A DNA stretch of 64,000 nt, from contig NC_086098.1 in assembly GCF_963921235.1 (NCBI RefSeq), positions 235,910,001 through 235,974,000 on the forward strand, read 5' to 3'. Shown here piece after piece: positions 12,501 through 64,000 of the stretch. The stretch is from Mobula hypostoma. Taxonomy: Eukaryota. Both the position numbers and the translations under genes were made by a program. Each line of letters opens with the position of its first letter. Positions within the stretch are counted from its first letter, which is position 1. The notes beneath the pieces are model-generated. The model was not told where the DNA came from and did no database searches. It worked only from the letters and a program-made list of their open reading frames with translations.

Positions 12501-13162
12501 CAGCCCAGGGACTATTCTCCCGCCATCCTGCATTGTTGCCACCCTCACTTGGGAGATCGAATCCAAAGTAAAAGAAGCCCAACGGGGCGACCCCGACCCC
12601 GGTAAAGGACCCCGGCGATCGCCTGTATGTGCCCGTGTCCGTCAGGTTTCAGGCATGGGGGCACACATCTCCGTTCGCCTGCCATCCCGGGAGAGATCGG
12701 ATCCTAGCGCTCCTGGAAAAAAAACACTTTTGGTGGCCGTCCATGGAGGCGGATACCTGTTCCTATGTCTCGGCATGTTTCATCTGTGCCCGGGGAGAAG
12801 CCTCTCATCGGCCACCTGCGGGTTTACTTCGTCCTATACCTGTTCCTGGTCGTCCCTGGTCGCACATCGCCTCAGACTTCGTCACCGGTCTACCCCCTGC
12901 ATATGGAAACGCCACCGTACTCACCGTGGTCGACCGGTTCTCCAAGGCGGTGTACTTCGTAGCCCTCGCTAAACTCCCATCCTCAAGAAACAGCAGATCT
13001 TCTGGTCCGACAGGTCTTCCGCCTCCACGAAATCCCCGCGGACATCGTCTCCGATCGAGGTCCCCAGTTCGTTTCGGAGGTATGGGAGGCCTTCCGTCAA
13101 GCCTTAGGTGCACCGGTCAGCCTGTCATCCGGCTTCCACCCTCAGACGAACAGGCAGACGGA
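9600..13162 (+). pseudogene. Gypsy gag-pol, frameshifted
   Basis: Domains spread over ORFs 9740-10138, 10634-11197, 11301-11633, 11588-12346 and 12629-13162 in shifting frames. Confidence 0.9.
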
Positions 13163-13834
13163 TTTTTCCATCCAAGGGGTCAGTGTAGACATGGTGAAGG
13201 ATTACAGATACCTGGGGATACGAATTGACAATAAACTGGACTGGTCAAAGAACACTGAGGCTGTCTATAAGAAGGGTCAGAGCCGTCTCTATTTCCTGAG
13301 GAGACTGAGGTCCTTTAACATCTGCCGGACGATGCTGAGGATGTTCTACGAGTCTGTGGTGGCCAGTGCGATCATGTTTGCTGTTGTGTGCTGGGGCAGC
13401 AGGCTGAGGGTAGCAGACACCAACAGAATCAACAAACTCACTTGTAAGGCCAGTGATGTTGTGGGGATGGAACTGGACTCTCTGACGGTGGTGTCTGAAA
13501 GGAGGATGCTGTCCAAGTTGCATGCCATCTTGGACAATGTCTCCCATCCACTACATAATGGACTGGTTGGGCACAGGAGTACATTCAGCCAGAGACTCAT
13601 TCCACCGAGATGCAACACAGAGCGTCATAGGAAGTAATTCCTGCCTGTGGCCATCAAAATTTTCAACTCCTCCCTTGGAGGGTCAGACACCCTGAGCCAA
13701 TAGGCTGGTCCTGGACTTATTTCCTGGCATAATTTACATATTACTATTTATGGTTTTATTACTATTTAATTATGTATGGTGCAACTGTAACGAAAACCAA
13801 TTTCCCCCGGGATCAATAAAGTATGACAATGACT
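13163..13834 (+). mobile_element. 5'-truncated Rex1/Babar-like LINE nested in the Gypsy integrase
   Basis: [17 protein letters not shown]...[15 protein letters not shown]...VVCWG; 3' end AATAAA followed by ATGACAATGACT tail. Confidence 0.85.
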
Positions 13835-16790: not shown

Positions 16791-17119
16791 TCACTGCGCA
16801 CAGGCGGACGAAGAGATGGTGTTTCGCAGTGGCGAGCTCAGCGAGCTGTGGCTCACGCTGCAGGAATAACTCGAGCCCTTGTTCCAGGCAGCGGTGGTTA
16901 CTCGCAGGTAACTGCTCAGCCTGTAGGTCTGGTCGGTGTCCGTGGACACGGCGCTTGTCATCACACCACTGTCCGTCTCCACGCCATCCACGTTCCAGCG
17001 CAGCGCGACCAAGCCCGGCTTAAAGCCGCTCACTAGGCAGGATAGAGTGGCAATACCCGAGCCGGTCTCATCGGGAGAGGGAGGGAGCAAGTGAATCGAG
17101 GGCTTTCTGCTCTCGCTAC
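16791..17119 (-). CDS. Ig light chain constant exon (type I / sigma-cart, NS5-like)
   Basis: Acceptor cacacag at 17121-17120; (S)SESRKPSIHLLPPSPDETGSGIATLSCLVSGFKPGLVALRWNVDG...YRLSSYLRV...WNKGSSYSCSVSHSSLSSPLRNTISSSACAQ*; C1-set Cys/Trp/Cys and terminal interchain Cys intact; phase 1 matches the J donor. Confidence 0.97.
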
Positions 17120-17877
17120 CTGTGTGTGAGAAAGGCGATGGGAGGAGGAGGAAAATATCATCATTAGCCAGTGAATTTCCTAAAAAGCGCCACACACTGA
17201 CCGAGCTCCCGTCAAATTATGATCACAATGTACCAACTATACAGACAATCGGTGAAATCTTGGGTACACAGTGCGGGCATTCGACCCATCGACGGTCCCT
17301 TTCATGGAATCGTTGCCACCCCTCAGGTCTGGTACTGGTAGACTGTTGCCCACCCCTCAGGTCAGGTCTGGTAATTTTCACGCATTTGATACCGTCCCGG
17401 TGGTATTGTTCTCTTTGCTGTGGAAGGTATCTGAGGGATGAGGTGGGGTGGGGGAGGTTACGGGGTGGGGTGGAGTGATGAGCCTGGCAAATCCCCAAAT
17501 CTATATTCTATCCATTATGTGGTTTTGGATATTCCAGCTTTAGACGTTCATAGACGGGGGCGCCCCGGTATTGGAGTGGCAAGGTAGATATCGATATCTC
17601 GCCATCCAATAAGGCAGCACGAAGCGGCGAAGATACAGAAAGGGTCAGAGAGATGAGTGTTTTATCTGTATGTCATCTTCAATGTCCTTTATTATCCTTC
17701 ATTGTATTTGGCAATAATGACGCATTCTCTGTCACAAGCTAGGAAACGTTGACTTATCACGTATCATGCCTGTTAACACTAGTTTGAATGATTGACCTCT
17801 AATAAATTTAGGGTTGAGTGCGGGAGATGAGTTGGCGACAACTGGAATATGAGGACGGGATTTACGGATTAAAAGTT

Positions 17878-17915
17878 GGGACTTTCGAGTCGCTCTGCCT
17901 CGTGTGGGAAATTTC
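17878..17915 (+). promoter_or_regulatory. Pair of kB-like motifs in the J-C intron
   Basis: GGGACTTTCG (17878-17887) and GGGAAATTTC (17906-17915), each 9/10 to GGGRNWYYCC; function is inference. Confidence 0.3.
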
Positions 17916-18125
17916 AAAGGATGAACAAAACGTGGAAGCAATTCCCGACATTTAATAATCGTGTTCTCCCGAGGATCTGAATAGCCAAGGATGCCGAACT
18001 GAATGTGCAAATTCTGCCTTGAAGAGAGATCGATACTTCGGCCAGGATAGAGCCATCTAACAGCACGATTGAAATGGAGATTTCTTCGAAAGCCTAATTT
18101 GATATAAAACGAGAGGATTACTTAC

Positions 18126-18485
18126 TCTTTATCTCCAGAATCGTCCCCGGTCCGTAGAACCAACCAACACCACTTTCCCACACTCTGCAGTAATAGACGG
18201 CCGAGTCGCCGGGCTCCAAGCTGCAGATGGTCAGGATGTGACTGTTGGCGGAGGTGTCTCTGGACGGTTGAAAACGTTCGGTGATGCCGGGTCCTCTGTA
18301 AATGATATTACTCGTGGTATGACTAATCACCCCCTCCGGTCTCTTCCCGGGACAATGTCGGTCCCAAGCAAATGTGTAACTTGCAACGTTTCCGTTCTGT
18401 ATCCGGCACTCTAAACGGGCAGTCTGCCCCGCGGAGACAGGACCGGGCACTGGGGTCTGATTGAGGACTGGGACCGCCAGGATAC
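18126..18485 (-). CDS. Ig light chain germline-joined VJ exon (type I / sigma-cart)
   Basis: Acceptor cattacag (18487-18486), donor A|GTAAGT (18125); (G)ILAVPVLNQTP...LECRIQNGNVASYTFAWDRHCPGKRPEGV...RFQPSRDTSANSHILTICSLEPGDSAVYYCRVWESGVGWFYGPGTILEIK; one 360-nt open exon, no heptamer/nonamer between V and J. Confidence 0.97.
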
Positions 18486-18633
18486 CTGTAATGAGACACA
18501 ATAAAACTACCAGGTGACTTGCAGCCACCAGAACTGCTATCAATCGCTGAAGACTCTCAGAAAACTGGCTTTCAAAGTTTCAACGAATTTCTTTTTTGCG
18601 GATAATTCGTGCGTTAACTAACCCGCCGCTCAC

Positions 18634-27274: not shown

Positions 27275-27415
27275 NNNNNNNNNNNNNNNNNNNNNNNNNN
27301 NNNNNNNNNNNNNNNNNNNNNNNNNNNNNNNNNNNNNNNNNNNNNNNNNNNNNNNNNNNNNNNNNNNNNNNNNNNNNNNNNNNNNNNNNNNNNNNNNNNN
27401 NNNNNNNNNNNNNNN
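27275..27415. other. Assembly gap (141 N) at the position of the copy-A microsatellite
   Basis: Run of N; right flank aligns to sequence just after 1300. Confidence 0.95.
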
Positions 27416-29125: not shown

Positions 29126-30517
29126 TTCTGGGAATAATATAGGAGGTGCAGGATCAGTTCATTCCAAAGAGAAAGAAAGATTCTAAGGGGCGACCGTGGC
29201 TGACAAGGGAAGTCAAGAACAGTATAAAATAAAAGTGAAGAAGTATAACATAGCAAAGACGAGTGGGAAGCTAGAGGATTGGGAAACTCTTAAAGAGCAA
29301 CAGAAGATAACTAAAAAGGCAATACGGGGAGAAAAGATGAGATACGAAGGTAAGCTAACCAAGAATATAAAGGAGGATAGTAAAAAGAACAAAGTTAGTT
29401 AAGACCAAAGTTGGGCCCTTGAAGACAGAAATGGGTGAATTTATCATGGGGAACAAAGAAATGGCAGATGAGTTGAACAGGTACTTTGGATCTGTCTTCA
29501 CTATGGAAGACACAAACAACCTCCCAGATGTCATAGTGGCCAGAGGACCTAGGGTAACAGAGGAACTGAAGGAAATTTACATTAGGCAGAAAATAGTGTT
29601 GGATAGACCGATAGGACTGAAGGCTGATAAATCCCCAGGGCCTGACGGTCTGCATCCCAGGGTACTTAAGGAGGTGGCTGTAGAAATCGTGGACGCATTG
29701 GTAATCATTTTCCAATGTGCTATAGTTTCAGGATCAGTTCCTATGCATTGAAGAAATGCTAGTCTTATCCCACTTTTTAAGAAAGGAGGGAGAGAGAAAA
29801 CAGGGACCAGTTAGCCTGACATCAGTGGTGAGGAAGATGCTGGAGTGAATTTTAAAAGATGAAATAGTGGCACATTTGGATAGCAGTAACAGGATCGGTC
29901 CAAGTCAGCATGGATTTACAAAGGGGAAATCGTGCTTGACTAACCTTCTGGAATTTTTTGAGGATGCAACTATGAAAATGGACAAGGGAGAGCCAGTGGA
30001 TGTAGTGTACCTGGACTTTCAGAAAGCCTTTGATAATGTCCCACATAGGAGATTAGTGGGCAAAATTGGAGCACATGGTTTTGGGGGTATGGTACTGACA
30101 TGGATAGAAAGTTGGTTGACAGACAGAAAACAAAGAGTAGGGATTAACAGGCTTTCAGAATGGCAGGCAGTGACTAGTGGGGTACCGCAAGGCTCGGTGA
30201 TGGGACAGCAGCTATGTACAATATACATTAATGATTTAGATGAAGGGATTAAAAGTAACATTAGCAAATTTTCAGATGACACAAAGCTGGGTGGCAGTGT
30301 GAAATGTGAGGAGGATGCTATGAGAATGCAGGGTGACTTGGACAGGTTGGGTGAGTGGGCAGATGCATGCCAGATGCAGTTTAATGCGGATCAATCTGAG
30401 ATTATCCACTTTAGTGGCAGGAACAGGAAGGCAGATTACTATCTGAATGGTGTCAAGTTCGGAAAAGGGGAAGTACAACGAGATCTAGGTGTCCTTGTTC
30501 ATCAGTCACTGAAAGTA

Positions 30518-32025
30518 TGTTATGGTCCGGATCGGGATCCCTTTAACTTTACCTTGTTTATGTTACGATCCGGACCGTTGATTCCCTGTTTGCCCGTGTC
30601 CCTCGACTTTGGTGATTAGAGGCAATTAACGCTCGGCTGAACCGGTAGTTTATAGTCTCCGGCTTTCAGCCGTTCGGCGCGGGAGCGTTTGTAAAGTCAT
30701 CCCAGGTACGGTGTTGCCGATGTCATCTGGCCGGAGCAAGCCTAGTCTCTGCCGAAACGAGTGCCGGTAATTCGCCTTTTCCTCACCGGAGCAACCCTGT
30801 CCAGTTATCTCGCCAAAGCGAGGCTGCAAAGTTTCCTCACCGAGGTGGGTCCGTCAGTTAACCCGCCGGAGGGAATCAAGAACGGCTATCTACTGTTCCC
30901 GGGCCAAGTCGAGAGCTCGCCAATACCCGGAGGCTCCAAGTCAAGTCCTGGCTCCGGCGGCATTCTAGCGCCAAGCCAAGTCCTGTCCCTGGCGGCATTC
31001 TAGCGCCAAGCCAAGTCCTGTCCCTGGCGGCATTCTAGCGGCAAGCCAAGTCCTGTCCCTGGCGGCATTCTAGCGGCAAGCCAAGTCCTGTCCTTGGCCG
31101 CATTCTAGCGGCAAGCCAAGTCCTGGCCCTGGCGGCTTTCAAGCACCAAGCCAAGTCCTGGTCCTGGCGGCTTTCAAGCACCAAGTCAAGTCCTGGCCCT
31201 GGCGGCTTCCGAGTTCTGAGTCAAGTCCTGGCCTGGCGGTCTGTGATTCCTGTCCTACCCCCTTGTCTGAATCCCTTCTCTGCCCCTCTCGTCTCTAGCC
31301 CTCGTCTGCAGCCCCCGCCTGCACTGCGGTCCAGTTCCATCACCGGAGCTAGATAGGTACTGTCTGGTGCTCATTCTTGTTGGTCTGGTCTTGTCTTGTC
31401 CTCGCCTCCGTGGGGTAAGTCAGGCCGTGTTGCCGTTGCCCCACGGGGGTCATGTCTTGTCTTGTCTGGTCTTCGCCTCCGTGGGGTAAGTCAGGCCGTC
31501 TTGCCGTTGCCCCGCGGAGGGTCATGAATCCCGGCCCTATGTCCTGTACCCAAGGAGGGGTCCCGGCTCTCTGTTCTGTGTGTGAGTCCTTGCCCTATGT
31601 CCTGTACCCAAGGAGGGGTCCCGACTCTGTTCTGTGTATGTGTCCATGGTTCCATGTACCTGCTCCCAGAGACTGAGGCTCTGTGTTCCCATGTTCCTCC
31701 TCTCCCTAGCCCATGTCATGTCCTTGCCTGGTTCTGGGGTCCGAGCCCGAGACAAGACCCAGGTACTGGGTCCTTGTCCAGTCTCTGGCTCGGAGTCCAT
31801 ACCCTAGCCCCTTCATGTCTCCTCTAGTTCTGGGAGCCGATTCCGAGCCCAAGCCCAGACCCTTGGTCCCAGCCTAGTCGTAGTCCTCAGTCCTTCTCCA
31901 GTTCGCTACTCCTGCTCCTGTCTAGTTCTCCTGATATCGAACAATAAACTAAATCTATGTAACCTCACAAGATGTGTCTTGCATTTGGGTCCACCCTTGC
32001 TCCCTAGGCCCCCGCCATTGTGACA
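30518..32025 (+). mobile_element. Solo-LTR-like element (1508 bp), 5-bp TSD AAGTA
   Basis: TGTTATGG...TGTGACA; AAGTA at 30513-30517 and 32026-32030; AATAAA at 31943; no coding domains. Confidence 0.88.
30940..31235 (+). repeat. 35-bp tandem array (~8 units) inside the solo LTR
   Basis: cattctagcg recurs at 30961, 30996, 31031, 31066 and 31101. Confidence 0.92.
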
Positions 32026-41893: not shown

Positions 41894-42039
41894 GTGAGAG
41901 TCAGGTTGGTTCAAGTACAGATTATCCGCAATGAAATTCGTTGAACTTTTCATTCATGCTGATTTTCAGCGTCTTTAGCAACGGATCACACTCCTGTTGG
42001 CTCCAAGTCACCCGTTGGTGTTATTGTGTTTTATTGCAG

Positions 42040-42360
42040 ATATCCTAGCGGCTCCAGTCTTCAGTCAGACCCCACGGGACAGACCGTCCGCTCAGAGTGT
42101 CAGAAATGTTGGAAGTTACCGCATGGACCGCTACCAACAGCGTCACGGAGAGGGGTAATAGTGGGGTTCAGATTACGCACTGAGCTGATAATATTATTGC
42201 GGTGGACTGGGATTACAAACCATTCCCAACCGTCGAGAGAAGCCACCAGCGACAGTCACATCGGCATATTGGAGCCCTGACAAATACCAGCGTCACTGCG
42301 TAACGTGGGATAAACCGGTGAGTATGATCCTCGGTCCGGGTGCAATTTGAGATATAAAGA
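42040..42360 (+). pseudogene. Germline-joined VJ pseudo-exon (type I / sigma-cart IgL)
   Basis: Acceptor ttattgcag; DILAAPVFSQTP then deletions, frameshifts and stops; SQPSREATSDSHI; HCVTWDKPVSMILGPGAI*DIK; donor degraded to GCAAGT; no C exon recognised downstream. Confidence 0.9.
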
Positions 42361-42569
42361 GCAAGTGACTCCCTCGCTCCATTGCAAACAATTCCCATCA
42401 CAGTCGTTTTCATTCCTCACCTTCGGAGACTTCCCCGTTCCGCAAGTGTTGGCCCTGTACCTGCAAGGTGGAAGAGTTCGAACTACCTCATCTTGACGCA
42501 TGGGGCCATTCAGCCCTTCGAATCCACTCTAGCATTCAATTGTATGAACCTTTTACTCGCGGTACGCTC

Positions 42570-46564: not shown

Positions 46565-49225
46565 CGATGGCATGCAAAAGTTTGGGCACCCCGGTCCAAA
46601 TTTCTCTTACTGGGAATAGCTCAGCGAGCAAAAGATGAACTGATTTCAAAAAGGCACAAAGTTAAAGATGACACATTTCTTTAATATTTTATGCAAGATT
46701 ACTTTTTTGTTTCTATCTTTCACAGTTTCAAAATAACGAAAAAGGAAAACGGCCCGAAGCAAAGGTTTGGGCACCCTGCATGGTCAGTATTTAGTAACAC
46801 CCCCTTCGGCAAGTATCACAGTTTGTAAACGCTTTCTGTAGCCAGCTAAGAGTCTTTCAATTCTTGTTTGGAAGATTTTCGCCCATTCTTCCTTGCAAAA
46901 GGTATTTAATTATGAGAGATTCTTGGGCCGTCTTGCATGCACTGCTCTTGAGGTCTATCCATGGATATTCGATGATGTTTAGGTCGGGAGACTGTGAGGG
47001 CCATGGCAAAACCTTCAGCTTGCACCTCTTGAGGTAGTCCATTGTGGATTTTGAGGTGTGTTTAGGATCATTATCCTGTTGTAGAAGCCATCCTTTTTAC
47101 ATCTTCAGCTTTTTTTTACAGACGGTGTGATGTTTGCTTCCAGAATTTGCTGGTATTTAACTGAATTCATTCTTCCCTCTACCACTGAAATATTCCCCGT
47201 GCCACTGGCTGCAACACAAGCCCAAATCATGATCGATCCACCCCTGTGCTTAACAGTTGGAGAGGTGTTCTTTACATGAAATTCTGCACCCTTTTTTCTC
47301 CAAACATACCTTTGCTCATTGCGGCCAGAAAGTTCTATTTTAACTTCATCAGTCCACAGGACTTGTTTCCAAAATGCATCAGGCTTGTTTAGAAGTTCCT
47401 TTCCAAACTTCTGACACTGAATTTTGTGGTGAGGACGCAGGAAAGGTTTTCTTCTGATGACTCTTCCATGAAGGTTATATTTGAGCAGGTGTCGCTGCAC
47501 AGTAGAACAGTGCACCACCACCCCAGAGTCTGCTAAATCTTCCTGAAGGTCTTTTGCAGTCAAACGGGTGTTTTAATTTGCCTTTCTAGCAATCCTACGA
47601 GCAGTTCTCTCGGAAAGTTTTCTTGGTCTTCCAGACCTCAACTTGACCTCCACCATTCCTGTTAACTGCCATTTCTTAATTACATTACGAACTGAGGAAA
47701 CAGCTACCTGAAAACGCTTTGCTATCTTCTTATAGCCTTCTCCTGCTTTGTGGGCATCATTTATTTTAATTTTCAGTGTGCTGGGCAGCTGCTTAAAGGA
47801 GTCCATGGCTGCTGATTGTTGGGACAACGTTTGAGGAGTCAGGGTATTTATAAAGCTTTGATATTTGCATCGCCTGGCCTTTCCTAACGATGACTGTGAA
47901 CGTCATAGCCCTAAAATGTCATAAGAGGGGTGCTGAAGCGGACCCAAATACAAGACACAGACACTGACGTACTGGGAACTGGACTTGACTAGAGTTAGGA
48001 ACGGGACTGGACGCAGACTAGGAGCTGGGACAGGAACACAGACTTGGGCTAGGACTTTGGCGAGGAAAGCGGGACCAGGACAAGGAACTAGGAGCTAGGA
48101 GCCTGGGCTTGGACTCCGAGCCAGAGACTGGACAAGGTCCCAGAACCTGGGTCTTGATTCGGCTCGGACCCCGGAACTAGGCGAGGGCATGACGTGGCTA
48201 CAGGACTGGACGCAGGCTTGGGTTCTTCGAGGCTTTCCTGGGCAGGACGAGGTACTCCTTCTTGGAACGCAGGGCCGGGATGCTTTCGTAGGGCCGGGCC
48301 CCTTCCTTGGACGCCGAGCCGGGATGACTGCCGAAGTAAACCGCCGAGGAAACTGACAGAGATTCAGATGGGGAGGGGAAGAGAACAGTCCTGCCTCAGG
48401 GGAACAGCAAAGACGGCCTGACTTACCCAACGGAGGCAAGGACAGGAAGGGACAGATCCAACCGCAGGGTAACGGCAATGACGGCCTGACTTACCTCATG
48501 GAGGCAGGGACAGAAAGGGAGCTCACTCCAGGGTGGCTCCAAGTCTCAGGGCGGCCGGCAACCTTGACTAGCTACGGAAACAGCCGAATCCATATCTAGC
48601 TCGGAGTGGTAGACGGCCACTCAGCTGGCCCCGGAAACAGCCGAATCCATACCACAATAACTGCTCCGACTAGAGAGAACAAGGCTGCATGAAGCGGTGG
48701 TCCTCCAACCAGGCCTAGAGTTCACGCATGGCTGTTCTAGCCTTCCACCGACGGGTTGCTCCAAGGGGATACTGACGAGACGAACCAGCCCCTACACTCG
48801 ATCCCAGGGCCAATTATATTCCCCGCCTCAAAACGAGCATCAGGTGCCTATGATTAAGCCCAGCTGAAACAAGGGGCCCGGAAGACCCGGAGTGCAGAGT
48901 CCACGGACCGGACCGTGAACCGGAATGCGTTCTCCATGAACCGTACCATGACATAAAAAGCTATTTGAGGTCTGAGACCTTGGTGAAACTTATCTGTGAG
49001 CTCAAATCTCTTGGGGTGCCGAAACTTTTGCATGGTGCTCCTTTCCCTTTTTTCACTCTAAGATTGTACAAGACAAAAATAATACTCTAATTTTGCTTAA
49101 AATTTTGGAAAGAATGTTTCATCTTTAACTTTATGACCTTTGGAGATCAGTTCATCTTCTGCTCACTTAACTATTCACAGTAACAGAAGTTTTGACCAGG
49201 GATCCCAAACGTTTGCATGCCGCTG
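46565..49225 (-). mobile_element. Tc1 DNA transposon with TA TSD, interrupted by solo LTR
   Basis: TA flanks at 46563-64 and 49226-27; TIR ends ..atggcatgcaaaagtttggg / cccaaacgtttgcatgccgctg; transposase pieces GYKKIAKRF, VLWTDEVK, WPSQSPDLNIIE. Confidence 0.93.
47917..48953 (-). mobile_element. Solo-LTR-like element (1037 bp), 5-bp TSD TAAAA
   Basis: TG...CA termini; TAAAA at 47912-47916 and 48954-48958; shares blocks with 30518-32025 and 63636-64000. Confidence 0.88.
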
Positions 49226-51069: not shown

Positions 51070-51330
51070 ACAGAAAGACAGGGAGGGAGAGGACGGGGAG
51101 AGAGAGAACAAGAGAAATGGAGAGAGGGGAGGATAGACAGAAGAAGGAAAAGAGAGTGAGAAAGGTGGAGAGAGAGAGGAGAGAGAGGGAGTACGATGAA
51201 GGGAGGTAGAGAGAGACAGAGACAGGAGAGGCGGAGGGAGGGAGGAGAAAGAAAGCAGAGCTGAGATGGAAAGAGAGAAGGGGACAGGGAATGAAGAGAA
51301 AGAGGAGAGAGAAAGAGAGGTGTATAAAAT
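51070..51330 (+). repeat. Polypurine (GA-rich) low-complexity tract
   Basis: Directly visible. Confidence 0.9.
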
Positions 51331-51362
51331 CGTGAAGGCACAGAGTGCAAATAAAGTAATTA

Positions 51363-51368
51363 TTTATT
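51363..51368 (-). terminator. AATAAA polyadenylation signal of the HAAF-like gene
   Basis: TTTATT on the plus strand, 20 nt after the stop codon. Confidence 0.75.
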
Positions 51369-51387
51369 GAGGTCTCGTGCCTTCCCT

Positions 51388-51448
51388 TCATGGTTGAAAC
51401 ATGTTCGTAGAGACCATTGCGCAGTAGCGGAATTGCCAGCGACGTTCT
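51388..51448 (-). CDS. HAAF/dermatopontin-like gene, last exon: (G)ERRWQFRYCAMVSTNMFQP*
   Basis: Acceptor cttttctcttgcag; phase 2 matches the previous exon; TGA at 51390-51388. Confidence 0.88.
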
Positions 51449-52108
51449 CTGCAAGAGAAAAGAAGACAGTCGGTGGACGGGACAGTTGACTGGGGAGTTC
51501 AGGGGCCACTGTGGAGCGAGAGAGAGAGAGAGAGAGAGACCGACTTCCCATGCGTTATGAGTGACTCTTGCGGCGGCATCTCTGTGAGGGAACAGCTTCA
51601 CACCTTCGATCAGCCCCGGATTAAACCAGAGCTGAGCCCCAACAGGGGGCGGTAATCAGCCGCGGATTCCGATCGCAGGAACGGCACTCGGACGTGGAGC
51701 AAATAGGAGGCGCGTCCTCCCCACAGCCTCACGCAGTGTGACACTTCCTTCTCGCCACCCCTCCCACAGTGTGACTATCCCTCAGTACAGGCTCTATCAC
51801 AGTCAGACGGCCTTTTGCCATTGGTCCGTAGAGTCATACAGGGGGGGAAGCAGGCCCTTCGGCCCAAACCATCCATGCTGACTGTGTTCTCCAGTGAGCT
51901 AGCCCCCTCAGTCTGCGTTTCGCCCACAGCCGTCTAAACCTCCTACTTCTCCAAATAGTTTTTAAACATTGCAAATGTGCCCGCCTCAACTGTTCATTTC
52001 AAGTATACACCGCCCTCCTCGTGAAGAAGCTGCCCCTGATGTTCCTTTTACACCTTTCGCCTCTGGTTTCAAACCTCCTCCATGGTCTGAGGGGGTCACC
52101 TTACGTAC

Positions 52109-52261
52109 CCGCTCTGGTTCTCATGGTGACGCACGATTCCGGCCAGGTAGTGATCGGCCGGGACCTCCCAGCTGAAGTACTCGTTGCGCTGGTTGACGTA
52201 GGGGGACCAGGCACAGCCCCGGAAACAAACGCGGCCAGCTTCACAGCAGTAGAACCTCCAC
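52109..52261 (-). CDS. HAAF/dermatopontin-like gene, penultimate exon
   Basis: Acceptor ttgttcccag, donor GG|GTACGT; 153 nt; WRFYCCEAGRVCFRGCAWSPYVNQRNEYFSWEVPADHYLAGIVRHHENQS with the family motifs WxFxCC and CxWSxYVN. Confidence 0.9.
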
Positions 52262-52989
52262 CTGGGAACAAGACAAGAAGCCGGGCGTCACTCATCCGAC
52301 CAGCAATCTCCGGCCCAGCGGGGAGGGCATGTTACACGATACCTAAAACTGGTGAAGGCTTTGCCGCTGTCTGCAGCAGGACAGCAATCAGCAGAGCGCA
52401 GAATGGCTGGTGGAAAATTAGTGTGAAATGGTGCAGTGTACACACCCCACTTGAATTTAAAGTGATTGGAGGAAAGTATAGCGTGTCCCGAGGTAGGTAT
52501 GTTTTACAGAGAGTGATTGGTGGGTGGAATGCTTTACTAGGGGTGATGATAGAGGCAGATACATTAGAGACATTTAACTTAAACAGGCACAGAGATGATA
52601 GAAAAATGAAGGGCTTTGTTGCAGGGAAGGGTTAGTTTGATCTTAAAGTAAATTAAAAGATCAGCACAGGATTGTGGGCTAAAGGGTCTGTACTGTTCCA
52701 TGTGCTATGCTCAATGTTCAAGAACAGTTAGTTCCCCTAATCATTCAGTTCGTGGAGAAGCCCAAAAACCTGCAACACTATGACCACTTTGTACTAAAAG
52801 GATATTTTACTTTTACTCTAATTGTAAAAATGTTGTATTATCTATGCTCTTGTAAATGCTGCTTGTGCTACGTGCTACGATGCTGCTGCACTTTCTACAT
52901 TTTACTTGTGAAGACGTGGACTGTGCAGATGACGATAAACCTGTATTCAAAACACTCGGGAAGTTCGACAGCACGCAGGACACAGCAAG

Positions 52990-53560
52990 TCCCACCCACA
53001 CTCCGACCCTTACTCCCCCACCCTCACTGCCCCATCCCTACACTCTCCCGCACTGCCCACCACACTCGCCTTCACTGCCCTACCCGCACCCTCTTCCTCT
53101 CTCTCCCCCACCCACACCCTCTCCCTTGCTTCCCCACACTCACCAACACCTTCTCCCTCATTCCCCCACCCTCACTCTCTACCTCAATTCCCCACATTCT
53201 CCGTATTCTCCACTAGCCTATCCGTACCCTCTCCATCACCCCCGCCACAACCTCTCCCTCACTCCCCCACCCAACTCCCTCCCTCAATTGCTCACACAAA
53301 CTCACACCCTGTTTCCCCTCCACCCTCTCTCCCACTGCCCACACACAACCTCACCCTCACTCCGTCACCCTCTCTCTCACTGCCCCACCGACACCCTCTC
53401 CCTAACTGCCCTACCCACCCTTCCTCGCTCTCTCTCTCTCTCTCTAGCCCTCACCTACCCCTTCTCCCACAAAACCGCTCACCCTCTTTCCACCACTCCA
53501 CCCTCTTCCGCACTCACCCGCCCCACCCTCTCCCTCACTCCTCCACCCACACCCTCTCCC
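52990..53560 (+). repeat. Polypyrimidine/C-rich low-complexity tract in HAAF-like intron
   Basis: Directly visible; source of spurious Pro/His/Leu-rich ORFs. Confidence 0.9.
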
Positions 53561-53879
53561 TGAATCAGAGGAGGATGAAGGGAGGATGAACTAGGAGGGG
53601 ACTAAATGAGGTAGATATTTTACCCGCGGTGCAGGAGCCTCAGACAAGGACCATAGATGTACAGTGAGGGGGGAGGTTTGCAGGAGATCTGTGTGTGCCT
53701 GGACGCTGGTCACACTGACCAGACCGCCGAGACAGATATTAAATCGTTGGGACGTGTTGGGATACAGACCTACCACGGGTAAATAAGGGTAGATGGGTGC
53801 AAGCGGTGGAACGGATCCGCTGGACTAAATGGTCTGTTTGAATGCTGATGAAGTCCCTGGAAACTGAGGAACAGTGGAG

Positions 53880-54420
53880 TATGAAAGAGGGAAAAAGGAG
53901 AGGAGGGCGAAGTGGGGGGGGAGTTTGAGAGAGAGAGAAGGAGGGGGGCAGAGTGAGACAGACCCAAGAGAGGTGGAGAAACTGGGGGATAGCGAGGGAG
54001 AGGGAGAGAAAAAAGGGGAGGGGTGGAGAGAGATAAGACAGAGAAAGAGAGAGACGACAAGGGAGGGAGGCAGAGAGAGAGGAGAAGAGGGAGAGGCAGG
54101 AAGAGGTGAGAAGGAAAGAGAAAGGGGAGAGAATGAGAACGAGAGAGACGGGTGAAGAAAGGGGGAAAGAAAGGAGAGGTAGAAAGAATGAGAGAGGACG
54201 AGGGAGAGGAGCACGAGAGAGAGAGGGGAGATGGGGAAAGAGAACAGAAGGTAAGGAGAAAAAGATGGGAGAGGGAGAGGCAGAAAGGGGGAGAAAAAGA
54301 GAGGCAGACAGAGGTAGGGAACGAAGAGAAAAGGAAATAAAGCTGAAGAGAAAGAGAAGGAGAAGGGAGGAAGGATGAAGAGATTGGGCAAGGAAGGAAG
54401 ATGTGAAGAATGGAGAGGAG
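53880..54420 (+). repeat. Polypurine (GA-rich) low-complexity tract in HAAF-like intron
   Basis: Directly visible; source of spurious Glu/Arg-rich ORFs. Confidence 0.9.
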
Positions 54421-55078
54421 GAGGCTGTGGATCGGGAAGGGAGAAATGAGACTTCCCTACGTCCCTACAACCACGCAGTGCTTGAACCGACCTGCAGAGC
54501 ACCTCTGCACTATTGTGTTGTTTTATATAATTGACTTGTTCGGTACAATTTATTTCTACGTTGCCTTGTATAATTACTGTATAATTCATGTACAACGTTC
54601 TATAGTCCATGCCTATGTGTCTATGTGCCTGTGATACTGCTGCGAGCAGGGTTCGAATTAAACCTGTACCTGACACCTGACAGCGGCTAGGAGGGAGGGA
54701 TGAGGGTGCGATCTGCGTGGAGTTCGTGAGTTCTCCCTGTTATCTCCCGGATGCTCCGGTACTCTCCCACGTCGCACAGACGTGCGGGTCTTTTCGCAGG
54801 TGTGTGGGTGAGGGGTAAAATTGACGGTAACGAAGGGGAAGGCGGTTAATGAATGGGATCGCCGGCAATGTTCTGAAAAGAGACAGAGGTGCGATGGGCT
54901 GAGTGGCCTCTTCCCGTGCCAGTGTGAAGTGACGGGGACCGAGACAGATTTTGCGCAAATGCAGGTCAGTGGCGGAAGTGTGCACTGTAAGTGAGGCATA
55001 GAGCCCTAACCAGGCAGCACTGCAAAGGACGCGACGCCCGACCAGTGGAAGGACCCGCACTCGGGGAAAGGGGATTAC

Positions 55079-55267
55079 TTCCGATCCTTTTGGATGTCGC
55101 CTCGGAGATTCTCCGCCCCGCAGATCAGAGCCTCGGACGGGCAGGAGAAATTTATTCCCTCGTCGAATCTGTTGACGTAGTCTGTCCAGGAACAGCTAAC
55201 GTGACCCTGGAAAGTTGATTTACAGGCAAAATCCCAAACTCTTTCCTCCGTCTTGTTATTGAACTGG
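55079..55267 (-). CDS. HAAF/dermatopontin-like gene, internal exon
   Basis: Acceptor tttactcttcag, donor AA|GTAATC; 189 nt; QFNNKTEERVWDFACKSTFQGHVSCSWTDYVNRFDEGINFSCPSEALICGAENLRGDIQKDR; phase 2 at both ends. Confidence 0.9.
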
Positions 55268-56104
55268 CTGAAGAGTAAATAAAAAGATCACAGTTCAAGT
55301 GATTCGTCTCCACTTTGGAGACCCTTTCAGTGCTGTACCTTTGTGCTAAATCGGCTTCCCTAGAAACTTTGATTCCCTACCATCGTTAGTACGTATAGTA
55401 GGCCAACATCCATTATCAAAGTCACCCACCAACCGGGCCATGCCATCTTCTCGCAGCGACCATTAGGTACAGAAGCCTGAAGCTCCACGGCATCAGGTTC
55501 AGCAACAGCTATTTCTCTTGAACCATGCGGTTCTTGAACCAACTGGCAGGACCCTAATCACTACAGTTTAGCAACACGATGACCACTTCGATCATTTTGC
55601 AAAAAAAAAAAATCCATTGCTATAATTGTGCTTTTGGAAAAGCTGTATAAGATGTTTAGCTGTTTAGTGTGAATGTGTGTAACAGATGCTATGCGCTTGT
55701 GATGCTGCTTCAAGCAGGTTTTTCATTACACCTGTGCGTACGTGTACTTGTACACATAACTCTAAACTCGATACAGACTGTAAACTTCAGGTAACTGGTA
55801 TTCACTCCGCCCCTTATGTCTCTCTTCCTGATCTGCTCAGATCTACACTCACTCAGATCCCTGTCACAGGTCAGGTAGGATCTGCAGAGGGAGAAACGGT
55901 TTCTCAGGTCGATGACGTAACTCCACCATGCACGGTCCCAGGCCCAGGCGCGAACGGAGAAGGGTTGGGCATGAGGCTAGCAACCTCACCTCGTTAAAAA
56001 AAAACACAAAGCTACACAAACATCAACGTGAGCTCCAAAGACCTCATCCCTGGAAAAGGAATTTCCTCGCATGGAAGACATATAAAGTTGTGTCGTTATA
56101 GAGT

Positions 56105-56680
56105 TCTTAGAACATGACAATATAGAAATAGGCCCTTCGGCCCATCTAATCCGTACCGAACCATTAATCTGCCTAGTCCTATTGACCTGTACCCAGACCA
56201 TAGCCCTCCATACCCTTCCCTAGCATATACTTATTCCAATTTCTCTAAAATGCTGAAATCGCCACCGCATCCATCAGTTGGGCTGGCAGCTCGTTCCACA
56301 CACGCACCACACTCTGCGCGAAGAAGCTAACCCTCACGTTCCTCTTAAGCATTTCACCTTTCACCCTTAATCCGGGACATCTAGTTCTAGACTCACCCAA
56401 CCTCGGTGGAAAAGGCCTGCTTGCATTTACCCTACGCATGCTCCTCATAATTTTGTATAACTCTATCGATCTTATACGTTCTATGGAACAAAGTCCCAAG
56501 CTATTCAACCTTTCCCTACAACTCCAAATGTTAAGTCCCAGCAACGTCCTTGTAAGTTTTCTCCGCACCATTTCTATCTTATTTACATCTCTCCTGTAGA
56601 TAAGTGACCAAAACTGGACACAATACTCCAGATTAAGCCTCACCAACGTAACATCCCAACTCCTCTACTCAATACATTGA
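56105..56680 (-). mobile_element. CR1 LINE 3' fragment
   Basis: VRLNLEYCVQFWSLIYRRDVNKIEMVRRKLTR. Confidence 0.85.
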
Positions 56681-56682
56681 TC

Positions 56683-59590
56683 TGTTGTTATTGTTCAGTC
56701 GCTAAGCTGGGTCCGACTCTTCGTGACCCCGTGGACTCCTGCACACCAAGCCTTCTTGTCGGAAACTGCCTCTCTAAGTTCCCCCAAGGTCATGCGCGTT
56801 GTCTGAGTAATATTATCTATCCATCGTAGCCTCTGTCGTCCTCTCCTTCTTTTGCCTTCTTTACCTAACATGCGAGTCTTCTCCAAGGAATCCTGTCTTC
56901 TCATGATGTGGCCAAAGTATTTCAGATTTTGTCTCATAATCAAGCCTCCTAGCGAGCGGTCTGGCTGCATTTCTTCAGGTATTGACTTGTTGGATCTTCT
57001 TGCTGTCCAACGAACCCTTCACACTTTCCTCCAGCAACCAAGTTCAAAGGCGTCGATTCTTTTGTATTCAGCCTCACTAATAATCCAGCTCTCACAGCCA
57101 TACATCACAACTGGAAATACCAGAGACGTGACTGTACGGATCTTCCTAGACAACCTTACGTCTCTGCTCTTCAGTATTTTAACTAAATTTGCCATTGCTG
57201 ACCTCCCCAGAAGTAAGCGTCGTTTAACTTCGTGGCTGCAGTTACCATCTATAGAATTCTTTAAACCGAGGAAGACAAAATCCGTCACTGCTTCCATTTC
57301 CTTTCCAATTATTACCAAAGAGTTAAGAGGGACGGTTGACATAATATTGGTTTTCTTAATATTGAGCAACAAGCCAGCTTTTGCACTTCCTTCTTTCACT
57401 TTTATTAAAAGTTTCCTCAGATCCTCCTCACTTTCAGCCATTAAAGTAGTATCATCTGCATATCTGAGGTTGTTAATATTTCATCCGGCAATTTTGATTC
57501 CAACATTTGAGTCCTTTAGACCAACATTCCTCATGATGTGTTCAGCAAATAGATTAAATAAGTAGGGTGACAGTATGCAACCTTGTTGTACTCCTTTCCC
57601 AATCTTGAACCAGTTTGTTGTTCCGTATTCATTTCTAACTATTGCTCCTTGTTCTTCGTGCAAGTTTCTCGTAAGGCGGATCAGATATCGAGAAGATATA
57701 CCACTTCTTTAAGGGTTTGCCATAGTTTATTATGGTCCACACTGTCGAAGGCTTTAGAGTAGTCAATGAGACATAAATAAATACTTCTCTGGAATTCCCT
57801 CGATTTCTCCATTATCCAGCGTAGGTTAGCAATATGGTCTCTGGTGCCCCCGCCTCTTCTAAAACCAGCTTGTACATCTGGCAGTTCTCGTTCCATATAT
57901 TGCTGGAGTCTTGCTTGCATGATCTTTAGCATTACCTTGTTAGCATGCGAAATTCATAAAATTGTTTGGTAATTTCAACAATCCTTTAATTTTTCCTTCT
58001 TGAGAATTGGGGAAAAAACTGATCTTTTCCAGTGTAAAGGCCATTGTTTTATTTTCCGGATCTGCCGGCGAATTGCAGGCAACACTTTTACAGCATCACC
58101 TGTTATAGTTTCAAACAATTCAACTGCAATCCCGTCACATCCTGCAGCCTTATCATTGTCAATGTTTTCGATTGTTTATTTGACTTCATTTTCCAAAATG
58201 ACCGGCTCTAGATCGATGAGGGGGTCATTGCAAGTGTCTTCGCTATTGGGATCTTTCCTGTGCAATTCTTTTGTGTATTCCTAATATCGCTTTATGATGT
58301 CTTCTGCTTCTGTAAGGTCCTGCTTTCTTTGTTTTACACTATAGGTATTTTTGCATGAAATGTTCCTTTGATTTCTCTAATCTTCTTGAATAGATCGCTT
58401 GTTTTTTTTTCCCAGTTCTGTAGCTTCTTCAGCTTTTTTGCATCGCTCCTTTAAGTAAGTTTCCTTATCTTTCCCTGCTACTCTCTTGAACTGCGTTCGG
58501 TCGGAGGAATTTGTTCCAATCTCCATTGGCCTCCACTTCTCTTCGCTGCTCAGCCACTTGCAGAGCCATTTTGCTTTCCTGGTCTTCTTCTGGTTTGCAA
58601 TATTTTTTGTTGCCACCTCTTGTATAATGCTCCTTACTTCTATCCATAGAGCTTCTGGCATTCTCCCTCCCAGGTTTCATCCATCGAATCTGTTCTTCAC
58701 CTCCACAGCATATTCTTGAGGGACGCTATCCTCATCAAACCTTGCTGGTACGTTGCTTTTCCTGATGCTCTTCAGTTTCGTCCTGAATTTGCAACAAGCA
58801 GCTCACGGTCTGAGCCACAATCTGCTCCTGGTCTTGTTTTAGCTGACAAGATAGAGCTCTTCCATCTCTGATTGCAGAATATATAGTCAATTGCTTTCAG
58901 TGTTGACCGTCTGGTGATGTCTATGTATAGAGCTATTGAAAGAGCGTATTTGCTATAACCAAAGAGTTAACTTGGCAAAATTCTGCCAGCCGATGTCCTG
59001 CTTCATTCCGTCCTCCAAGGCCAAAGTTGACCGTTACCTCAGGTGTTCTGTGATTTCTAACTTTGACATTCCAGTCCCAATGATAAATGTAACGTCCTTT
59101 TTGGTGTCACATCCAGAGCGTGCTGTAGTTCTTCATAAAAGTGGATAATTTCATCCCCTTTGGCATCTGTGGTTGAAGCATAAACTTGGATCACTGTGAT
59201 GTTGAAAGGCTTGCCTTGAGGTCGTAATGCGATCATTTTATCATTTTTTGGAGTTGTATCCCATCACTGATTTTGGTACTCTTTTTTTTTGACAATTAAA
59301 ACTACTCTATTCTGTCTGCAGGTTTCCTGCCCACAGTGGATCTGGTAACTGTCTGATGTAAAGTGACCCATTTCAGTCCACTTTAGTTTGTTAATTCCCA
59401 ATATGTCAACTTTTCGTCTTGCCATCTCGTTTTTGACCACATCTAGTTTATCTTGATACATGGATCTTACATTTCAGGTTCCAATGGCATATCGATCTTT
59501 ACAACATCGGACCGTCTTTTCATTTCCAGGCACATCAGCAGCTGGACGTCCCCTCAGCTTTAATCCAACCACGTCATTAGCTCCGGTACT
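56683..59590 (-). mobile_element. RTE-BovB-like LINE, near full length, degenerate
   Basis: IGT*NVRSMYQDKLDVVKNEMAR...DILGI; MERELPDVQAGFRRGGGTRDHIANLRWIMEK; QGCILSPYLFNL; 3' tail gggtcacgaagagtcggacccagcttagcgactgaacaataacaac. Confidence 0.9.
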
Positions 59591-60790
59591 ATTCTGTCAG
59601 GCTCACCGGCCTTCAATATCCTGGCTTATACTTAGAACCTTTCTTAAACAACGGAACAACGTTAACTATCCTCCAATCCTCCGACACTTCACCTGTGGGT
59701 AAGGATGTTTTAAATATCTCGGCTAGGGCCCCTAAACTTTCTGCATTAACCTTCCACAGGGTCTGAGGGTACACGTAGTCAGGACCTGGGGATTTATCCA
59801 CCCTAATTTTCCACAAGACAACAAGCACCTCCCGAGTAAATACAGATACAAAAAAAAACACGTTTTAAAATCTACCCCATCTCTTTCGGCTCCACGCATG
59901 GATTATTATTAATCTTCCAAAGGACAACTTTTGGCCCATGATATCATTTTGCTCTCAATATATCTGTGGAAACCCTAAGGATGCTCCTTCACCTTGTCTG
60001 CTAGAGCAACCTCATGTCTTCTTTTATCCCTCCTGATTTCCTTCTTAAGTGTTCTCTTGCATTCCGTATACTCCTTCAGTACCGCATTTGTTCATACCTG
60101 CTAGGCACCTCCTCCTTCTCACTAAACAAGTCTTCTCTAGAAAAAAAAGGTATCTTTGATATCCTTGCCTTTTATTCAGACAGGAACATATAAACTTCCT
60201 ATTTTCAAAAATGTCATTTTTGAAGGCCTCCCACTTACCCAGTACACCTTTACCATAAAAAACAATCTGTCCCAGTCCACACTTGCCAGATACTTTCTAA
60301 TACCATCAAAATTGGTCTCACCCTAAGTTAGAATCTCGGCCCCAGGACCAGGCCCACTCTTTTCCCTAAATTATATTGAAACTAATAGCAGTATAATCAC
60401 TAGATGCAAAGTTCTCCCTTACACAAGCTTCTGTCACCTGTCCAGTCTCATTCCCTAATAGGACATCTAGTATGGCACAGTCTCCAGCTGGGGCTTCTCT
60501 GTACTGATTAAGGAAACTTTCCTGAACAGATTTGGCAAACTCTATCCCGACTAGCTCTTTTACAGTATAGGAGCCCCAATCAATGTGTAGAAAGTTAAAA
60601 TTATCTACTATCACAAACTTACGTTTCTTGCTCAGACTGCGATCTCTCTACAAATTTGATCCTCTAAATCCCGAGTCTGTTGGGTGGTCTATAAATATAA
60701 TCCTACTAGAGGTCATACCTCTCTTATTCCTCAGTTATATCCATAAAACCTCACTAGATGACCTCTCCAGTCTGTCCTAACTTAGCACTG
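59591..60790 (-). mobile_element. CR1 LINE ORF2 (endonuclease to pre-RT) fragment
   Basis: ESFLNQY...AILDVLLGNETGQV; DKSPGPD...WRIVNVVPLFKKG. Confidence 0.85.
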
Positions 60791-60999
60791 CCGTGACATT
60801 TCCCCTAACTAATAATACCACCAATCGCTCTTTTAATCCCTCCAGCTCTATCACTTCTCAAAGAACAGAACCCCGGAACATTGAGCTACCAGTCATTCCC
60901 CTCCTGCAACCAAATCTCACTAATGTCATAATTCCACGTGCTGATCTATGCCCTACGCTCATCCGCCTTTCCCACAATATTTCTTGCTTTGAAATACCC

Positions 61000-63635
61000 C
61001 CGATTGAGTACCTGGTAAGGTTCTTGAAACTGTGCCGACCAACTGGAGGGTATATTCAGGGACATTTTCGACCTCTCATTGCTACAGTCGGAAGTTCCCA
61101 CCTATTTCAAATGGGCCAGAATTATACCAGTGCCCAAGAGTATCGTCCAGTAGCACACTTGTCTACGGTGGAAAAAAATGCTTTGAGAGATTGCTTATGA
61201 CCAGAATCAACTCCTGCCCCAGCAAGGACCTGAACCCACTGCAATTTTCCTATCGCTACAATAGGTTTATGGCAGACGCAACCTCAATGTTTTTCCACAC
61301 GGCCATAGATCACCTGGACAATGCAGACACCCATGTCAGGTCGCTCAGCGGTTAATGCCATCATTCCTACAGTCTTGGTCGATAAGCTACAGAACCTGGG
61401 TCTCTGTACCTCCCTCTACAATTGGATCCTTGACTTCCTAACCGGAAGACCAGGACACTGGCGCACCTCAGGGATGTGTGCTTAGCCCACTGCTCTACCC
61501 TCTCTATACCTATGACAGTGTGGCTAGGCATAGCTCAAATGCCATCTAGAAATTTGCTGACGATACAACCACTGTTGGTAGATACTTAGATGGAGACGAG
61601 AGGGCGTACAGGAGCGAGATATACCAGCTTGTTGAGTGGTGTCGCAGCAACAACCTTGCACTCAACGTAGGATCAGAGCTAATTATGGGCTTAAGAAAGG
61701 GTAGGACTCCGAATCACGAACCAATCCTTATAGAGTGATAAGAAGTGGAGAGAGTGGGCAATTTCAAGTTCCTGGCTGTCGAGATCTCTGAGGATCTACA
61801 GTGGTGCTAGAAAATTCGTGAACCCTGTAGAATTTTCTCTATTTCTGCATAAATATGACCTAAGCAGATCAGATCTTCACACAAGTCCTAAAACTAGATA
61901 AAGAGAACCCAATTAAATAACAACACAAAAAAGTTAGACTTGTTCATTTATTTATTGAGAAAAATTATCCATTATTACATGTATTTGATGGAAAAAGTAT
62001 GTGAACCTCTGGGGTAATGTCTCCGACAAAAGCTGCTTGGAGTCAGGTGTTACAATCAATGAGATGAGATGGGAGATGTTGGTTGTGAAGGTGCTCTGCC
62101 GTAAAAAAAGACCCACAAAGTCAGGTTACTGACAGAGCCTGCTCTTCTCTAGAAAAATCTGTTGAAGTGCACGATGCCTCAATCGAACCAACTTTCAGCG
62201 GACCTTAGAAGAAGAATTGCACAGATGCACGGAGTTGGATTTCTAAAGACCTGGGTGTTCATCAGTCCACAGAAAGAGAAATTGTCTACAAATGGAGGAA
62301 GTTCAGTACTGTTGCTATTCTCCCTAGGAGTGGGCGTGCTGCAAAAATCACATCAAGAGCAATGTTAAAGAAGGTGCAAAAGAACACAAGGATAACGTCA
62401 AAAGACCTACAGAAGTCTCTAGGACATTCCTGTTCATGTGTCTGCTGTAATAAAAACACTGAACAAGAATGGTATTCATAGAAGGACACCACTGCTCTCA
62501 AAAAAAAAACACGTCTCAAATTTGCAAAAGACCACCTGGACCACGCTTCTACGGCAATGTTGTGGACAGATGAGAGAAAAGTTGAATTTTGTTTTGTCAG
62601 AAATGCACATTGCTATGTTTAGAGGAAAAAGGGAACTGCACACCAACACCAAAACCTCGTCGCAACTGTGAATGGTGAAAGGAGCATTGTGTTTTCGGGG
62701 TGCTTTGCTGCCTCGGAGCCTGGACAGCTTGCTGTCGTTGAGGGAAGAAGGAATTCAAAGTTGTGTCAAGCCGTTTTACAGGAGAATGTCGGGGTAGCAG
62801 TCCGTCACCTGAAGCTTAATAGAAGCTGGATAATGCAACAAGACAATGATCCGAAAGACAAGAGTAAACCAACAGCAGAATGGTTTTAAAAAAAATAAAT
62901 TTCATGTTTTCGAATGGCCAAGTCAAAATCCTGAAGTTAATCCTCTAGAAATGTTGTGGAAGGCCCTAAAGCAAGCAGTTCATGTAAGGAAGCCCACCAG
63001 CATCCTAGAGATGAGGCAGTTTTGTAAGGAGGAATGGCTTAAAATTCCCCCAGGCCGATGTGCAGAACTGATCAACAGTTACCTAAAACGTTCGTTTGAA
63101 CTTATTGCTGTACAAAGAGGTCACACCAGGACGAAAGTAAAGGATCACATACTTTATCCTGCAAATAGATGAAATACTCAATCATTTTTCTAAATAAATG
63201 AATGAACAATTATAATGTTTTATGTGATGTATTTAATTAGGTTCTCTTTATCTAGTTTTAGGACTTAGGTGAAGATTTGGTCAGATTTTGGATCATATTT
63301 ATGTAAAAATAGAAAAAACTGCGCAGGATTCACTAATTTCATTGCACCGCTGTAACCTGGTCCCAACATATTGATGCAGCTATAAAGAAGACAAGACTGT
63401 GGCTATATTTCATTAGGAATTTGAGGAGGTTTGGTTTGTCACCTGACACTCGAATATTTCTGCAGATAAACCGTAGGGAGCGTTCTGGCAGGATTCATCA
63501 CTGCCTGGTATGGTAGTGGGAAAGTTGTAAAATTAGTCAGCTCCATCTTTGATATTAACCTCCATAGTATTCAAGACATCTTCAAGGAGCGGAGTCTCAG
63601 CAGGGTGGCGTCCATAATTAAAGATCCCATCACCC
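61000..63635 (+). mobile_element. Rex1-like LINE RT remnant split by Tc1 (61000-61798 and 63353-63635)
   Basis: KCFERL..., [26 protein letters not shown]; rejoins across the Tc1 as GAGGATCTA|ACCTGGTCC. Confidence 0.8.
61799..63352 (+). mobile_element. Tc1 DNA transposon with long imperfect TIRs and TA TSD
   Basis: TA at 61797-98 and 63353-54; cagtggtgc... / ...gcaccgctg ends; WIMQQDNDPK, WPSQNPEVNPLE; transposase frameshifted. Confidence 0.93.
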
Positions 63636-64000
63636 TGTCACGGTCCGCATTCTGGTTCACGGTCCGGTCCGTGGATTCTGTATTCCGGCTATTCCTTGTC
63701 TCCCTTGTTCCGTTGGGCACCTTAATTGAGGCACCTGATTCTCGTTTCGAGCTGGCAACTAAATAGCTCTGGGGTCCAGTGATTCCTTGCTGGATCGTCC
63801 TCGTCAGTAACCTCAGCAGCAATCTCAGCAGTAACTTCGTCTCTGCTGGGTAGGTACGGCCATTTGCCGCTACCCTGAGTGGGCACTGTCTCTTCGTGTT
63901 CTCGTCTCCGCTGAGTGGCTCTGGCCGTTTCGCCGCTACTCTGAGTTGGGAACTGTCTCTTCGTGTCCTGTGCCCAAGTGAGGAGCCCCGGCTCAGTGTT
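63636..64000 (+). mobile_element. LTR-like element start (runs off the window)
   Basis: TGTCACGG start; homologous to the reverse complement of ~48800-48953. Confidence 0.75.

Follow-up and report, generated by a model that had tools for sequence, protein, structure and literature searches.

Do three open minus-strand exons in a 64,000-nucleotide stretch of the Mobula hypostoma genome (contig NC_086098.1; the whole stretch is hereafter the window) belong to a working gene, which family does their product belong to, and is the gene connected with the immunoglobulin (Ig) light-chain segments that lie in the same window? A sequence-only reading had proposed a hidden gene of the dermatopontin/hemagglutinin-amebocyte aggregation factor (HAAF) family at 51388-55267. 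We find that the three exons very likely form the 3' coding part of a genuine Mobula gene, intact and transcribed, that encodes a 184-residue protein of the DERM family, and the identity of the gene and of its family is close to certain. The gene is already known from public annotation and is an ordinary member of a known family.

Exon structure of the gene

Re-reading of the minus strand over 51300-52400 and 54950-55400 gives three coding exons with AG/GT borders, at 55267-55079, 52261-52109 and 51448-51388 (exons A, B and C). In the list below, residue numbers refer to the RefSeq protein XP_062888013.1, repeats are its three tandem repeats, and X1 and X2 are public sequencing runs.

55268-64000, minus strand: 3' part of the first intron; runs past the window end, with transposon remains throughout
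55079-55267, minus strand: exon A, second in coding order; residues 51/52-114, closing repeat 1 and covering most of repeat 2
52262-55078, minus strand: intron A/B; 2817 bp, phase 2, skipped in X1 (depth 977) and X2 contigs
52109-52261, minus strand: exon B; residues 114-165, closing repeat 2 and covering most of repeat 3
51449-52108, minus strand: intron B/C; 660 bp, phase 2, skipped exactly in an X2 contig
51388-51448, minus strand: exon C, the last coding exon; residues 165-184 and the stop codon TGA at 51390-51388
51362-51367, minus strand: AATAAA polyadenylation signal, 20 nt 3' of the stop codon, read directly

Exon A is flanked by a cttcAG acceptor and a GTaatcc donor and contains 62 open codons, and exon B is flanked by ttcccAG and GTacgta and contains 50; the acceptor of exon C is cttgcAG. 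All three introns are in phase 2. Exon A opens on the third base of a codon, a codon is split as AA and G between exons A and B, and another as GG and A between exons B and C. The spliced exons A, B and C translate into 133 residues with no internal stop. The splice borders, the phase-2 junctions, the 133-residue frame and the AATAAA signal reported by the sequence-only reading are all reproduced, the protein sequence letter for letter.

The annotated protein and its 5' end

The 133-residue product is identical to residues 52-184 of XP_062888013.1 (184 residues, Mobula hypostoma, assembly GCA_963921235.1), which RefSeq names "hemagglutinin/amebocyte aggregation factor-like". Exon A by itself is identical to residues 52-113, and spliced contigs of both X1 and X2 extend over it; when exon A was searched with phmmer against 1.84 billion representative proteins, XP_062888013.1 was the best of 371 relatives. 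Since RefSeq already models the gene, in this species as in at least 13 other elasmobranchs, it is not hidden in the public annotation, and this word of the earlier proposal has to be withdrawn. The exons, their phases, the family and the position of the missing exon had nevertheless been reconstructed correctly from the letters alone, so the result serves mainly as a check on the scan that produced the proposal.

The 5' end of the gene lies outside the window. Residues 1-51 of XP_062888013.1 have no match anywhere in the window (tblastn with residues 1-55; nothing above chance), and the open reading frame listing contains only transposon-like frames in 55268-64000. The annotated gene range is 16,551 bp, which, counted from a 3' end near 51340-51388, places the 5' end near 67,900. 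The first coding exon would sit about 3.9 kb past the window end at 64000, across a large transposon-filled intron. The 8.7 kb of this first intron within the window contain a reverse transcriptase fragment (RVT_1; 57681-57932, E-value 2e-9) and a weak transposase fragment (DDE_3; 62846-63172). This arrangement agrees with the earlier claim that a signal-peptide and first-repeat exon lies beyond 64000 across an intron filled with transposable elements. The exons of the window also leave positions 1-23 of the Pfam DERM profile and the leader uncovered, which calls for a further upstream exon; that exon is expected to end in ...GTTGTCAG followed by GT.

Spliced contigs from public sequencing runs

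To characterize splicing, four public runs were compared with 51250-55400; these consist of assembled contigs, whose RNA nature is only guessed. In run X2, a 394-nt contig (record 9) aligns with 0 mismatches to 55257-55077, 52259-52109 and 51448-51387. Between these blocks 2817 and 660 bases are left out, and the skipped segments have CT..AC ends on the plus strand, which correspond to GT..AG on the gene strand. Given a 2-base ambiguity at the first joint (52259/55077 shifted by 2), the joints are 55079/52261 and 52109/51448, exactly those that the sequence-only reading had predicted. The A/B junction is also present in the X1 contig of depth 977. Run X1 has another organism code and differs from the window three times within exon B; the two differences that are listed (52162 and 52180) fall at third codon positions and are synonymous, leaving Val and Glu unchanged.

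A second X1 contig (record 8, depth 1188) reaches the missing part of the gene. It covers 55172-55271 and then continues for 143 letters that do not align to the 51250-55400 stretch. The reverse complement of the displayed part of these extra letters reads PYRGSISMV, and with the four bases TCAG, common to the upstream exon and the end of the intron, the frame goes on as VVSQF. This reading corresponds to residues 41-53 of XP_062888013.1, of which residues 41-51 belong to the upstream exon. The extension therefore shows a real upstream exon, joined by splicing to the acceptor at 55267.

In X1, the exons reach a depth of about 1000 and the introns one of about 4, and this 250-fold excess argues for RNA over a processed DNA copy. 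The high contig depth in one ray library also suggests that the protein may be abundant enough for purification. In a second run search, exon A was found in RNA-like runs of four organism codes and not in sister runs of the same species or sample, which hints at tissue-restricted expression, contigs being unable to prove absence.

These data bear directly on whether the three exons might be leftovers of a dead or partial copy for which the RefSeq model is over-predicted. Such a copy would account for a 5' exon that is outside the window and for a first intron full of transposon remains. It is contradicted by the open frame, by exact spliced contigs that include the upstream exon, and by the high exon depth. 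Moreover, the gene is conserved from sixgill and sevengill sharks to rays with all family motifs intact, and the between-species differences seen are synonymous. The pseudogene reading was rejected on the open frame, the exact spliced contigs and the conservation, and we regard it as extremely improbable.

Two stretches within the introns behave differently. At positions 51667-51805 and 52480-52650, the contigs of all four runs add up to a very high depth (up to 3954), and these positions are matched by many partial contigs that are 90-95% similar. They are dispersed repeats transcribed from many loci and are probably of the short interspersed nuclear element type. Intron A/B, which contains the repeat at about 52480-52650, also contains low-complexity CT-rich DNA.

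Membership in the dermatopontin family

The two longer exons of the intact gene were searched separately against the Pfam DERM profile (PF14704; 152 positions, gathering score 28.3 bits). Exon A alone scores 42.2 bits (E-value 1.2e-10, profile positions 24-87) and exon B alone scores 36.1 bits (E-value 9.2e-9, profile positions 89-137). Each exon is thus above the cut-off by itself, and the two match consecutive, collinear parts of one profile, which is far beyond chance; the full-length XP_062888013.1 carries a precomputed PF14704 assignment. The family assignment of the sequence-only reading, which had been drawn from repeated motifs, is borne out by this profile search. Both results that would have refuted that reading, the lack of a dermatopontin-domain hit and the lack of spliced sequence across 55079/52261 and 52109/51448, are thus contradicted.

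The protein contains three tandem repeats of about 45-55 residues, each closing in a (D/E/K)-R-x-W...C motif. The repeat ends read EERVWDFAC, KDRKWRFYCC and ERRWQFRYC, and the repeat-start motifs are WTDYVNRFD and WSPYVNQRN. Ten cysteines are located at positions 40, 66, 76, 93, 100, 119, 120, 126, 130 and 174. Across 51 family members, R60, C66, C93, D112, R113 and C119 are invariant, and conservation reaches at least 90% at N83, N137, C76, C120 and C130. The hydrophobic residues 6-14 (LLLLSALLS; mean Kyte-Doolittle value 2.6) form a putative signal segment that has a similar counterpart in the orthologues; the mature part has a computed mass of about 19.2 kDa. There are three N-x-S/T sites, and the N-K-T site is retained in most orthologues.

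Repeat 2 also contains an R-G-D triplet (residues 105-107; window positions ~55106-55098, minus strand), which is found in both Mobula species only. A role as an integrin motif was considered and rejected: the triplet is absent from Hypanus, Hemitrygon, Pristis and sharks, and its confinement to Mobula makes it probably a chance feature.

Predicted structure

An AlphaFold2 model was built on the family alignment and compared with AlphaFold models of Swiss-Prot proteins, so that both sides of the comparison are predictions. The model has a mean predicted local distance difference test score (pLDDT) of 85.4 and a predicted template modelling score (pTM) of 0.79, and is all-beta over residues 35-178. 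Its matches, with E-values, template modelling (TM) scores and sequence identities, are as follows.

Limulus HAAF (Q01528): E-value 3.6e-15, TM 0.77/0.82, 31% identity over 163 residues; the best Swiss-Prot match
Biomphalaria dermatopontin (P83553): E-value 3.6e-12, TM 0.71/0.87, 28% identity
Mammalian dermatopontins: E-value ~1e-11, TM 0.75, 27-28% identity, ~164 aligned residues
Millepora cytotoxin-1 (A8QZJ5): E-value 2.6e-11, TM 0.74, 24% identity

The predicted fold of the ray protein is the same as that of other DERM family members, with TM scores of 0.71-0.87 against the HAAF and dermatopontin (DPT) models. No solved structure of a DERM family protein was found by sequence search, and none by Foldseek at E-values of 0.001 or below; the DERM fold appears never to have been determined experimentally. 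In an exhaustive structural comparison, domain III of the Vip3A/Vip3C toxins ranks first with Z-scores of 7.3-7.6, and jacalin-type beta-prism lectins (Z-scores below 3) and the PCSK9 C-terminal domain appear at low scores. This hints that the three repeats of the model may form a beta-prism-like body of three sheets, which is to be taken as a lead and not as a finding, Z-scores of 7.3-7.6 being common for unrelated folds.

Orthologues and phylogeny

Orthologues with the same name and the same length are present in at least 13 other elasmobranch species and are 50-98% identical to the protein of Mobula hypostoma.

Mobula birostris: 98% identity
Hypanus sabinus: 91% identity
Hemitrygon akajei: 88% identity
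Pristis pectinata: 85% identity, partial model
Hemiscyllium ocellatum, Chiloscyllium plagiosum, Heterodontus, Heptranchias, Pristiophorus, Mustelus, Carcharodon carcharias and Scyliorhinus: 50-67% identity

These elasmobranch HAAF-like genes share the length and the motifs of the Mobula hypostoma gene and do not differ from it in kind. More distant relatives, with 31-43% identity, are HAAF-like in lampreys, a newt, cyprinids and a salmonid and dermatopontin-like in molluscs. A profile search with the family alignment returned only HAAF-like and mollusc proteins, and no vertebrate DPT. A maximum-likelihood tree was calculated from 18 named sequences, none of them a canonical DPT. It unites the elasmobranch sequences in one clade (100/99 support) at the end of a long stem of about 1 change per site, and this clade is nested in a vertebrate group (86/95 support) apart from the mollusc sequences.

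Could the ray protein instead be canonical DPT, or a DPT-like matrix protein that accelerates collagen fibril formation and supports cell adhesion, and not an immune agglutinin? Mammalian DPT is a protein of 201 residues with ten cysteines and a long tyrosine-rich N-terminal stretch. Vertebrate DPT, also termed TRAMP (Q07507 human, P19427 bovine), has the same Pfam domain and the same predicted fold as the ray protein. The number of cysteines is equal, and the mammalian models align over about 164 residues at a TM score of 0.75 and 27-28% identity, slightly under Limulus HAAF. However, the top match in both sequence and fold is HAAF and not DPT, and RefSeq assigns the HAAF-like name, not dermatopontin, to the ray protein and to all of its elasmobranch orthologues. 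The tree, which contains no DPT, groups the ray protein with the HAAF-like proteins of lamprey, newt and teleosts. The ray protein is also without the long tyrosine-rich N-terminal stretch: with 184 residues it is shorter than the 201-residue matrix protein, and the DPT alignments begin only at DPT residue 25-30. We consider the DPT identity quite unlikely.

Limulus polyphemus HAAF (Q01528), the source of the RefSeq name, is the closest characterized counterpart of the ray protein. Both proteins consist of a single DERM domain with the same repeat motifs, in 172 residues in Limulus and 184 in the ray. The Limulus protein is an arthropod haemolymph protein that is only 31% identical to the ray protein. 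In comparison with it, the ray protein has a short C-terminal tail past the last cysteine (10 residues, from A175), and its middle repeat is without the S-x-H-x-N consensus. Millepora cytotoxin-1 (A8QZJ5), Biomphalaria dermatopontin (P83553) and Haliotis dermatopontin 2 are also DERM proteins with the same predicted fold (TM 0.71-0.74) and 24-28% identity; the first is a cnidarian nematocyst toxin, and mollusc dermatopontins are shell-matrix or haemocyte proteins. Since the DERM domain serves ends as different as toxin, shell matrix and haemocyte protein, the function of the ray protein cannot be read from the fold alone.

Possible function

A cell-adhesion role is ascribed to dermatopontins. 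By analogy with the characterized relatives, namely Limulus HAAF and the dermatopontins of molluscs and mammals, the protein would be secreted in a mature form of about 19 kDa. Its compact three-repeat beta domain, braced by disulfides, would bind cell, microbe or matrix surfaces multivalently, and such binding would aggregate or attach cells, microbes or matrix. Among the vertebrates covered, HAAF-like proteins are present in lamprey, cartilaginous fish, teleosts and amphibians, and they appear in immune transcriptome and serum-proteome lists. In studies of Atlantic salmon with amoebic gill disease, which cite the Limulus work, a homologue is listed among the altered gill transcripts and serum proteins. 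The Limulus protein itself (18K-LAF) is credited with haemagglutinating and amebocyte-aggregating activity in the passage of PMC8202022 that cites Fujii et al. 1992.

On this analogy, a humoral agglutinin or adhesion role is possible, at somewhat less than an even chance. A matrix role like that of canonical dermatopontin, which is drawn from relatives in the same way, is unlikely. The more specific proposal is that elasmobranchs possess their own fast-diverged DERM branch, a soluble multivalent agglutinin of humoral immunity and a counterpart of HAAF that mammals may have lost; this we hold to be doubtful. If it is true, this branch, which would be strong in some tissues and absent in others, offers a first handle on the unsolved DERM fold.

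Several points weigh against the reading developed here, that of an intact, transcribed gene for a secreted HAAF-like agglutinin. The first exon and the promoter are outside the genomic DNA that was read. The runs are guessed to be RNA and are represented by contigs only, which carry no transcript ends, strand or expression level, and a processed DNA copy could in principle yield identical joints. The tree was built without a canonical DPT sequence. At 31% identity, Limulus HAAF is barely closer to the ray protein than mammalian DPT is at 27-28%, so the name says little about activity. In the literature, no functional test of any vertebrate HAAF-like protein was found; a search for dermatopontin or HAAF in sharks and rays likewise gave nothing relevant.

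Ig light-chain segments and other content of the window

Two regions of the window resemble Ig light-chain genes, and the repetitive elements and gaps observed elsewhere are listed with them.

16791-17195, minus strand: Ig C-domain frame
18118-18543, minus strand: open variable-joining (VJ) frame of 141 residues, with a leader, a V domain and a J-like end
41985-42365, plus strand: V-like segment that shares 34% identity with the VJ frame; interrupted at three places by five stop codons in all
9600-13228, plus strand: long frames that overlap one another and carry pol motifs of the retroviral type, such as the YLDDILIF reverse-transcriptase box in 11588-12346
29419-30619 (plus strand), 57481-57932 (minus strand), 47105-47563 (minus strand) and 62162-63172 (plus strand): reverse-transcriptase fragments of the long interspersed nuclear element type and transposase fragments of the Tc1/mariner type
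7229-7426 and 27275-27415: runs of N

The frames at 16791-18543 resemble an Ig light-chain cluster whose VJ is germline-joined, about 33 kb from the HAAF-like gene. The segment at 41985-42365 is an Ig light-chain V pseudogene, 9 kb from the 3' end of the HAAF-like gene. The sequence-only reading had drawn attention to this proximity and had itself called a functional linkage speculation: the nearness is real, and the linkage is unsupported.

A functional tie between the HAAF-like gene and the Ig light-chain cluster, whether by co-regulation or by a common immune locus, would draw on the V pseudogene 9 kb downstream, on the open VJ and C frames at 16791-18543, and on the discussion of relatives of the HAAF-like protein as immune factors. 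Yet the nearest Ig segment is broken by stops, and the intervening DNA is transposon-rich. The 10 kb downstream of the orthologue contain no called gene in Hemitrygon, Hemiscyllium or Chiloscyllium, which is weak evidence, as gene lists may omit Ig segments. The conserved neighbour is instead a peroxisome gene: a PEX11-family gene (238 residues) lies in opposite orientation about 6 kb upstream of the 5' end of the HAAF-like gene, outside the window, and the arrangement is the same in Mobula hypostoma and Hemitrygon akajei. Elasmobranchs have many scattered Ig light-chain clusters, so that adjacency by chance is expected. A functional tie is very improbable; nothing supports it, and the Ig light-chain segments are neighbours by position only.

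The window consists largely of transposon remains. The frames at 9600-13228 are probably a decayed long terminal repeat retroelement of the Ty3/gypsy type, and the two runs of N (198 and 141 bases) are assembly gaps or masked sequence.

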